DNA from: Podarcis muralis
Lineage: Eukaryota
Reading direction: 5' to 3'
DNA length: 64,000 nt
Assembly: GCF_964188315.1 (NCBI RefSeq)
Contig: NC_135655.1
Location: 114,576,001-114,640,000, forward strand
The translations under genes were made by a program, and so were the position numbers. Positions within the stretch are counted from its first letter, which is position 1. Every line of letters starts with the position of its first letter. The notes below the pieces were generated by a model, which saw only the letters and a list, made by a program, of their open reading frames with translations, was not told the origin of the DNA and did no database searches. This document shows, piece after piece, positions 16,109 to 52,898 of the stretch.

Positions 16109-16208
16109 TTTGGGGAGGAATTTGAAGAAGAGAGATTGTGTCCTTTGTAGGCTGACATCTCTACGAAAACATTCCCTGTGTAATTGTGGATGCCTCTGCA
16201 CAACCACA

Positions 16209-16271
16209 TGACAGCTAAGCCAATGAGATTTGAAAATGGCCTTCAGCCGCTACCTCCCCGCCGGTCACGTG
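16209..16271 (-). promoter_or_regulatory. HOXD10 proximal promoter motifs (TGACAG TALE site, CCAAT, CACGTG)
   Basis: TGACAG 16209-16214, CCAAT 16220-16224, GTCACGTG ending at 16271. Confidence 0.5.
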
Positions 16272-50008: not shown

Positions 50009-50308
<300 letters not shown>

Positions 50309-51739: not shown

Positions 51740-52472
51740 CTGGGAAGGAGGACTTCCAAAAGTGGGAGCCCTGGGCCTGGTCTTTGGCGCAGTACACCTG
51801 GCCGTTCCACCCGTTGGCCAAAGTCCACGACTGGTAGCCCTCCATGGAGATGTACGTCTCGTGCCTGGGCTCGCCGCCCGCCGCTGAGCCGAAGGTGGAG
51901 ACCACGTCCAGGTAGCCGGCGGGCACGTGCTGGTAAGGGCCGGCGGCGGCGGCGGCAGCGGCGTAGCCCTGGTAGAAAGAGACCTCCTTGGCTCGCGAGG
52001 AGACGTCGCTGCCCGACGGGACGCTGGTGCTGGCCAGGCCGGCCACGTCCATGTACTTCTCCACGGGGAAGGCGGCGTGCGGGGAGGCTTTGAGCGCGGC
52101 GTTCTGCTGCAGGCAACTGTAGTAGCCGTTGCCGAAGGGGTGGTAGCCCGGGTGGTAGCCGAGCGCGGCGGCCGCGGCTGCCGCGGCCGTGGCCGTCGGG
52201 GGCCCACCGCTGGAGCAGTCCTTGGAAGGGGCCGCCTCGGACGACGACGACGACGAGCGCGCCCCGGCCGACGAGCCCGAGCGCTCGTAGGGGAAGCCCG
52301 AGGAGGCGGCGGGACCCGCGGCTCGACCCGACGGCGGCGGCGCCGCTCCGAAGACAGGCGGCGAAAGGAAATTGCGGCACTGGCCCCGGCCGCTGCTGCT
52401 CCCGCCGCTCCCGCCGCCGCCGGCGTCTGCCCGCAGCGCCTCCATCTCCCAGCCGCTGCCTGCGCGGCTCAT
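51740..52472 (-). CDS. HOXD13: HOXD13 exon 1
   Basis: [16 protein letters not shown]...FGNGYYSC...FPVEKYMDV...[11 protein letters not shown]...[44 protein letters not shown]. Donor CCAG|GTACGG at 51740/51739, 733 nt, phase 1. Intron 50260-51739. Confidence 0.96.
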
Positions 52473-52606
52473 GCTGCCTGCGCCCAAGAGCCTCGCTGAA
52501 GGCGGGCGCGCCGCCGATGCTGCTGCTGCTGCTCCTTCTCCTCTTCCTGGCCTCCCTCCTCCTCGCCTCGGCCCAGCGGCGGCGGCGGAGGCCCCCAGCA
52601 GCTCAT
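52469..52606 (-). other. Upstream ORF (45 aa) in HOXD13 5' leader; its TGA overlaps the main ATG
   Basis: gcgcgccATGa at 52606, open frame [10 protein letters not shown]...WAQAA, TGA 52471-52469 within ATGA. Lies downstream of the TATA box at 52700-52695. Confidence 0.6.
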
Positions 52607-52694
52607 GGCGCGCCAAGCCACCGTAGCCGGGGCGACTGGTGCCTGGGACGGAGCGCTGGACGGGGCGGCCTCGCTCGCCCCCGGCTCGGGATGG

Positions 52695-52792
52695 TTTATA
52701 AAAACTAAGGCCACGCTGGGAGGGGGGACGCGGCGCCTGGCTTCGCAGGGAGGGCCAGCAGGGAGCCCCCATTGGCTCCTCACGCCCACGTG
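52695..52792 (-). promoter_or_regulatory. HOXD13 core promoter (E-box, CCAAT, TATA)
   Basis: CACGTG 52787-52792, ATTGG 52771-52775, TATAAA on minus 52700-52695. Confidence 0.65.

Positions 52793-52824: not shown

Positions 52825-52826
<2 letters not shown>

Positions 52827-52895
<69 letters not shown>
52827..52895. repeat. (AG)34 tract adjoining the HOXD13 promoter
   Basis: Perfect run starting 35 bp from the E-box. Confidence 0.95.

Positions 52896-52898
<3 letters not shown>

Follow-up and report, generated by a model that had tools for sequence, protein, structure and literature searches.

Thirteen Hox mRNAs, those of Hoxd10 and Hoxd11 ('mammals to tetrapods') among them, carry conserved inhibitory upstream open reading frames (uORFs) according to Ivanov et al. 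(2022, PMC8892498), and the TIE uORFs of Hoxa3 and Hoxa11 are inhibitory as well (Alghoul et al. 2021, PMC8172242). The former study screened all 39 mouse Hox leaders with start sites from E11.5 somites and neural tube; it looked for an AUG-initiated uORF that lies within the CAGE-defined leader, occurs in 90% or more of placental mammals (with conservation further afield also scored) and begins in suboptimal context, took ribosome footprints and derepression on removal of the upstream AUG as further criteria, and in its abstract describes upstream AUGs (uAUGs) in poor context. Hoxd13 is not among the uORF genes listed in the main text of the paper, an absence that may reflect the somite-based start sites, the poor-context criterion or a real absence of such a uORF from the mouse.

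Comparable arrangements exist outside the Hox genes. The C/EBP alpha and beta mRNAs (PMC5986274, PMC11109482) hold a small out-of-frame uORF that stops a few nucleotides before the first main AUG and is followed by further in-frame AUGs; its translation decides which AUG is used, and the resulting isoforms differ by whole domains. In caliciviruses and influenza B (PMC10275272) stop and start codons share nucleotides out of frame, as AUGA or UAAUG, in a coupling that follows long ORFs and needs a TURBS with UGGGA pairing to 18S rRNA. Gould et al. (2014, PMC3923131) described human cellular mRNAs with overlapping ORFs, some of them dependent on termination-reinitiation; these cases are second ORFs placed after main ORFs, one of which needs an Asp-rich C-terminal peptide, and HOX genes go unmentioned. 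Our full-text literature searches found no paper describing a uORF in HOXD13.

The locus described here lies in a window of 64,000 nucleotides from Podarcis muralis, by which we mean the whole stretch of DNA that was analysed. It contains the posterior part of this lacertid lizard's HoxD cluster, with everything on the minus strand and the homeoboxes of HOXD12, D11, D10 and D9 further down from HOXD13. The features of HOXD13 on which the argument draws are the following:

50009..50259 (ends approximate), minus strand: HOXD13 exon 2 coding sequence, with the homeodomain
51740..52472, minus strand: coding part of HOXD13 exon 1, with 99% identity to Podarcis raffonei Hox-D13
52443..52445, minus strand: in-frame downstream AUG (Met10, gggagAUGg, optimal context)
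52469..52472, minus strand: AUGA stop-start overlap, its TGA invariant in 12/12 sequences of alignment A1
52469..52606, minus strand: uORF of 45 codons plus UGA, with homologous uORFs in 11 other tetrapod loci
52601..52610, minus strand: uAUG block CGCCATGAGC, the longest stretch conserved in squamate leaders from the TATA block down to the main AUG
52606-52604, minus strand: uAUG, 94 nt below TATA, context cgcgccAUGa
52668..52684, minus strand: probable transcription start zone, from the contig ends of runs X7 (52668) and X2 (52684)
52688..52725, minus strand: core promoter block CCCCTCCCAxCxTGGCCTTxGTTTTTATAAACCATCCC, from alignment A1 and the squamate alignment
52700-52695, minus strand: TATAAA, inside the core promoter block
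52770..52775, minus strand: CCAAT box with an overlapping ATG (52772-52770), upstream of TATA

In the window the uAUG has G at -3 and A at +4, and the frame that it opens encodes a peptide ending in ...WAQAA and closes on a UGA at 52471-52469, which overlaps the main AUG of HOXD13 at 52472-52470. The preliminary description had placed an AUG some 90 nt below the TATA box, opening a frame of 45 residues whose UGA lies on the HOXD13 AUG, and these elements are all seen in the sequence, in the context that it gave. Taken in one genome alone, this layout is unremarkable: among 5000 dinucleotide-preserving shuffles of the 198-nt leader, which is 76% GC and has all three reading frames open, 12.7% held a uATG that was present solely in this frame and stayed open as far as the AUGA. 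At such a chance level (0.13) the window by itself proves nothing. Other elements upstream of the HOXD13 start include an E-box and a (GA)35 microsatellite (window 52826-52896), which precedes the TATA box by about 125 nt; a comparison with Rfam gave no family match on the leader, only sub-threshold noise from miRNA models at the (GA)n stretch.

We compared the window with 11 further HOXD13 loci, from six lizards (Podarcis raffonei, Rhineura, Tiliqua, Varanus, Sceloporus and Paroedura), the boid snake Candoia, the stork Ciconia, the platypus, the dolphin Sagmatias and the frog Engystomops. The 12 loci therefore comprise eight squamate sequences, the window included, and one placental, one monotreme, one bird and one frog, with turtles, crocodilians, marsupials, salamanders, fish, human and primates outside the sample; the dolphin represents the placentals because the protein searches offered no full-length cluster of mouse or human type and the chinchilla and bat protein models have broken N-termini. 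A homologous uAUG is present in 12/12 loci, in the +1 frame throughout and with a purine at -3 in every case, and it lies downstream of the conserved TATA box wherever that box was mapped. In each of the ten amniote loci whose TATA box was mapped it is the leader's only ATG, and likewise in the platypus, for which a nominal leader of 150 nt was scored as no TATA was found; the frog leader has a second ATG, which shares its frame with the uAUG.

The offsets from the uAUG to the AUGA (134, 125, 113, 101, 143, 134, 77, 107, 53, 56, 47 and 41 nt) are all 2 mod 3. As a control, the distances from the TATA box to the uAUG (94, 94, 100, 65, 104, 126, 87, 80, 53, 149 and 53 nt) take every residue mod 3, over a spacer that is as indel-prone as the one downstream. 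The frame test put forward in the preliminary description, that the spacer should stay at 2 mod 3 across tetrapods, thus holds in 12/12 loci, and its more general statement that uAUG, frame and stop-on-start layout were kept despite a change of the spacer can be extended to lengths of 41-143 nt across the tetrapods sampled. The uORFs themselves run from 9 to 48 codons, with 26-48 in squamates and 9-19 in the frog, stork, platypus and dolphin.

The immediate context of the uAUG falls into three types: G at -3 and A at +4 in squamates (cgccATGAGC.CC..GGGCC), A at -3 and C at +4 in stork and frog (ca(t/c)(c/t)ATGCCC), and G at both positions in the dolphin (cgcgccATGGGGTCGTGCACGGGGCC) and platypus (ggggccATGG). 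In the dolphin, cgcgccAUGg at -47 opens a uORF (MGSCTGPGPGPGQAGP) that terminates in AUGA; in the platypus the uAUG stands at -56 and its 19 codons also terminate in AUGA. Both agree with the layout that the preliminary description gave for the human HOXD13 leader, an AUG 53 nt upstream in a frame likewise ending in AUGA, and the dolphin comes close to it. Alignment A1 shows hardly any change in the core promoter block (CCCCTCCCAACxTGGxCTTxGTTTTTATAAAC) between frog and dolphin; in the platypus, neither TATA nor the core promoter block was found within 500 nt upstream, and the 450 nt upstream of the uAUG (L009:2500-2940) are a tandem array of a purine-rich unit of about 20 nt (GGGGAAGAAGGGACCGGAGA-like).

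We regard it as very probable that the conserved uORF configuration is under selection. What has been kept is the uAUG, its -3 purine and its frame, in a leader of which the rest has diverged beyond alignment. The constancy of the frame has to be read with two caveats in mind: GAG, CAG and CGG triplet repeats make up much of the variable spacer, and since such repeats gain and lose threes even in the absence of selection, they inflate the frame argument, and the same constancy is expected if uAUGs in the other two frames are merely harmful. Neither slippage nor such harm would explain the survival of the ATG in every lineage; we infer selection from its retention, rather than from a computed test, since a neutral triplet should be lost repeatedly over more than 300 million years.

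The harm done by other frames is also what would fix the frame of the uAUG if it were a tolerated relic with no positive role, surviving only in the frame that stops before the coding sequence and perhaps once the start of an ancestral Hox13 N-terminus (the MTAS... of HOXA13, HOXC13 and shark HOXD13) that a frameshift has cut off. Purifying selection against frames 0 and 1 alone would give the constant frame, and the start codon of shark HOXD13 (P0069) lies 28 codons ahead of the conserved MEGL motif, a position similar to that of the uAUG, which precedes MEGL by 77 nt in the stork and 65 nt in the frog. We nevertheless hold such a relic to be highly unlikely, as a neutral ATG in a diverged leader should have vanished in some of about 10 independent lineages over that span, and as the uORF peptides (MS.xGPP, MPGRGP, MPLSGL) are unlike MTAS. 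On the tetrapod loci compared, the MTAS N-terminus was dropped as a candidate, its positions being roughly compatible and its sequence without similarity.

Selection could, in principle, act on the nucleic acid instead of on translation. The uAUG block is the best-conserved block of the leader, its CGCCATG(A/G) in squamates and mammals holds the YY1 core GCCAT, and the uORF bears no codon-position signature, with 27, 33 and 36 Fitch steps by codon position over 25 ungapped codons of 8 squamates. All of this would suit a DNA or RNA element, for instance a YY1-like GCCAT or a promoter-proximal factor site, in which the ATG is incidental and the uORF not functionally translated. Such an element is nonetheless very improbable in our estimation: stork (catcATGc) and frog (cactATGc) retain the ATG alone and not GCCAT, the distance to TATA varies over 53-149 nt and thus speaks against a positioned core-promoter element, and a DNA site would leave the 2 mod 3 spacer downstream unexplained. 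The YY1-like site in particular was rejected, its GCCAT core being absent from stork and frog.

The same step counts, with no third-position excess among the 8 squamates, give no codon-level constraint on the uORF peptide, and across the uORF peptides only an M-x-x-x-G-P core recurs. A uORF with a conserved peptide, of the kind that stalls ribosomes through the nascent chain, was rejected on both grounds, the absence of a third-position excess and the retention of the G-P core only. Individuals of the window species carry four amino-acid-changing variants in the uORF and no uORF indel. The peptide is thus not what is selected, and it would be the act of translation and the frame that matter.

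The position of the stop deserves separate consideration. In the lizards, the dolphin and the platypus the uORF is closed by the UGA within AUGA. Of the stork's two in-frame main AUGs (MCKAMSK), the first is overlapped by the uORF over 13 nt, and the second, Met5, provides the AUGA at which the uORF stops; in the frog (MCKALSK) a uORF of 9 codons has its stop on the first AUG, as UGAUG; and in Candoia, where the overlapped AUG is now CUG, a uORF of 36 codons has been kept and stops at the same UGA. All told, the stop touches a main-frame AUG, as AUGA or UGAUG, in 11 of the 12 loci.

This recurrence invites the idea, a stronger form of the one in the preliminary description, that the AUGA overlap is itself selected and that coupled termination-reinitiation on the shared nucleotides, of the kind known from viral AUGA or UAAUG junctions, is the main source of HOXD13. 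The AT-rich frog leader would permit stops anywhere, yet its stop sits on an AUG, and a post-termination 40S subunit is able to restart on nearby AUGs (review PMC10275272). We consider this account unlikely, however, for reasons that concern both of its parts. The UGA owes its presence to the second codon of HOXD13, a serine (AGC) kept for the protein, and the overlap can therefore not be attributed to selection for coupling; Candoia (CTGA) keeps its uORF with no overlapped AUG. The claim of selection on the overlap itself is hence inseparable from the coding of Met-Ser(AGC).

The mechanistic part is weakened as well. As in the viruses, stop and restart codons overlap out of frame, but viral coupling depends on a long preceding ORF and on a TURBS, and the HOXD13 leader has neither: no UGGGA or TURBS-like motif and no structured element lie upstream, TGGGA occurs in no uORF of the 12 loci barring the platypus repeat, and the leader folds less stably than its shuffles (z = +2.7). 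A uORF of 45 codons with a spacer of zero is, moreover, unfavourable for ordinary reinitiation. The feature that has been kept is a uORF stopping at or beside a main-frame AUG, with no single fixed junction.

A second AUG is more constant than the overlapped one. In 12/12 loci gggagAUGg, an optimal context, follows the AUGA site or the uORF stop by 24-27 nt; protein models of snakes and salamanders, and some of birds and turtles, are annotated as beginning at this downstream AUG, and in the window, as Met10, it is a possible site of reinitiation or alternative initiation. The HOXD13 protein of Candoia starts at this next AUG, 24 nt downstream, the sole start left to it.

Two observations on the main start may be recorded here. 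In Candoia aspera (L007:2962-3003) the ancestral HOXD13 start has been lost through ATGAGC -> CTGAAC, and every snake model in the protein list begins MEALRG, so the loss of the start codon is probably snake-wide. In birds, turtles, frogs and caecilians a further in-frame start (MCKAMSK or MCKALSK) precedes the squamate and mammalian Met by 12 nt (L008:3001-3015, L011:3001-3015, protein models P0028, P0036-P0042 and P0054), and it is probable that HOXD13 of the ancestral tetrapod could begin at two or three alternative sites within a span of 36 nt.

One contig from each of three small runs, in two studies, extends unbroken from the coding sequence through both AUGs; the three end at 52668, 52684 and 52770. 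Those of X7 and X2 end 16-32 nt after the first T of TATAAA, whereas the X1 contig (depth 15) reaches 52770, past the TATA box. The label of these runs ('RNA?') is a guess as to library type; their depth of 15-82 from only 88-125 million letters excludes plain genome sequencing and favours mRNA as the source of the contigs that span the uAUG. The raw RNA run X16, of unstated tissue, gave zero reads on the stretch of the window. Past 52668 the X7 contig continues for 28 letters that do not match the genome (plus-strand consensus TAAAGTTATAGAGTTTATAAGGGCTAAG); since there is no AG acceptor at 52668, an upstream exon is a less likely source of them than a chimeric or adapter-like end. Within the Gly/Ser-rich N-terminal coding sequence of HOXD13, runs X2 and X7 show in-frame 3-nt insertions (CGG, CCG) at 52331 and 52410, from which it follows that triplet slippage is active in exon 1 in some individuals.

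These contig ends also bear on whether the leader might be coding, with HOXD13 starting at the in-frame ATG at 52772 and carrying about 100 extra N-terminal residues, as in the public 424-aa model of P. raffonei. In the window, P. raffonei and Rhineura, frame 0 has indeed no stop between 52772 and the MSRAGS start, which explains the 424-aa model, and that model uses the equivalent of the 52772 start. Yet this ATG sits in a CCAAT box upstream of TATA, the high-depth contigs end downstream of it, the corresponding ATG of Tiliqua, Varanus and Sceloporus is in another frame, and frame 0 holds stops in Paroedura and Candoia. An N-terminal extension from the CCAATG was rejected, as its frame relative to HOXD13 (0, 0, 0, 1, 1 and 2 across species) is not conserved and the comparison contradicts it; we assign this alternative a negligible probability. 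The start of the 424-aa P. raffonei Hox-D13 is probably an annotation artefact, placed in the CCAAT box, and the first ~97 residues of that model (L001:3001-3291) correspond to translated leader and promoter; the public model is thereby corrected.

On balance, and with moderate confidence, we favour the reading that HOXD13 carries a conserved, AUG-initiated inhibitory uORF, kept since at least the common ancestor of frogs and amniotes, that lowers or buffers its output. Under this reading most 43S complexes scanning from the cap would reach the uAUG first (-3 purine everywhere, +4 G in mammals), translate the 9-48 codons of the uORF and finish on the HOXD13 start or next to it, so that translation of the uORF would lower and buffer the amount of protein. 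HOXD13 would then be made by the fraction of ribosomes that leak past the uAUG, while post-termination 40S subunits may restart on the overlapped AUG or on the invariant AUG 24-27 nt downstream. We infer uORF translation, its inhibitory effect and the ribosome's route to the main AUG from sequence comparison. Leaky scanning and reinitiation at the conserved downstream AUG are equally possible routes. Set against reinitiation of the short-uORF type (GCN4, ATF4, C/EBP), HOXD13 offers a reachable downstream AUG, and the uORFs of frog, stork, platypus and dolphin are within some 30 codons; the length of the squamate uORFs counts against efficient reinitiation. Termination-reinitiation may still be regarded as plausible. 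With an exon junction about 730 nt downstream, the uORF might, in addition, make the mRNA a target of nonsense-mediated decay.

Set beside the systems described at the outset, the HOXD13 uORF resembles the conserved Hox uORFs in being short and AUG-initiated, in lying in a short Hox leader and in having been kept over vertebrate classes, and it would likewise be expected to dampen translation of the main ORF and to sensitise it to start-codon stringency. Presence in a placental and a monotreme is given by dolphin and platypus, one species each. With regard to suboptimal context, taken as the lack of a -3 purine and/or of a +4 G, squamates, stork and frog fit, whereas dolphin and platypus do not. 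HOXD13 departs from the poor-context uAUGs of PMC8892498 in its universal -3 purine and optimal mammalian context, and also in that its uORF stops on the main start codon. The HOXD13 uORF extends a principle known for 13 other Hox genes; particular to it, as its sequence reads, are the strong context in mammals and the stop on a main-frame AUG.

Within the window the HOXD10 leader (start codon 16108; window 16158-16209, minus strand) has uATGs at -101, -64 and -50, and the frames of two of them extend 40 nt past the HOXD10 start; they fit the conserved Hoxd10 uORF reported in PMC8892498.

The likeness to C/EBP lies in a small out-of-frame uORF ending beside the first main AUG with more in-frame AUGs behind it, and the choice of AUG in HOXD13 could hinge on the uORF in the same way; the HOXD13 starts are, however, only 8-12 residues apart. 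With the human mRNAs of PMC3923131 HOXD13 would share overlapping ORFs and, perhaps, a dependence on termination-reinitiation. A bolder proposal, which we put forward as decidedly speculative and quite unlikely, is that the uORF acts across tetrapods as a translational gate, controlling how much HOXD13 is made and also whether Met1 or the invariant Met 8-9 codons downstream is used, that termination on the start codon is the decisive step, and that the uAUG may be a fossil start codon of a longer ancestral Hox13 N-terminus.

The dosage of HOXD13 shapes the digits, the distal gut and the genital region, and synpolydactyly and brachydactyly result from small changes in how much of it there is or how active it is. 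A leader element kept from frog to mammal would add a translational layer to a gene so far studied almost solely at the level of enhancers and chromatin, and the uAUG, its frame and its stop would be a matter of few nucleotides at which non-coding variants could alter protein dose. Should the gate be real, snakes devoid of the overlapped AUG and lacertids with a poly-proline uORF of 45 codons would be instances of HOXD13 dosage evolution linked to limbs and digits, and leader variants could be unscreened alleles in human limb malformation.
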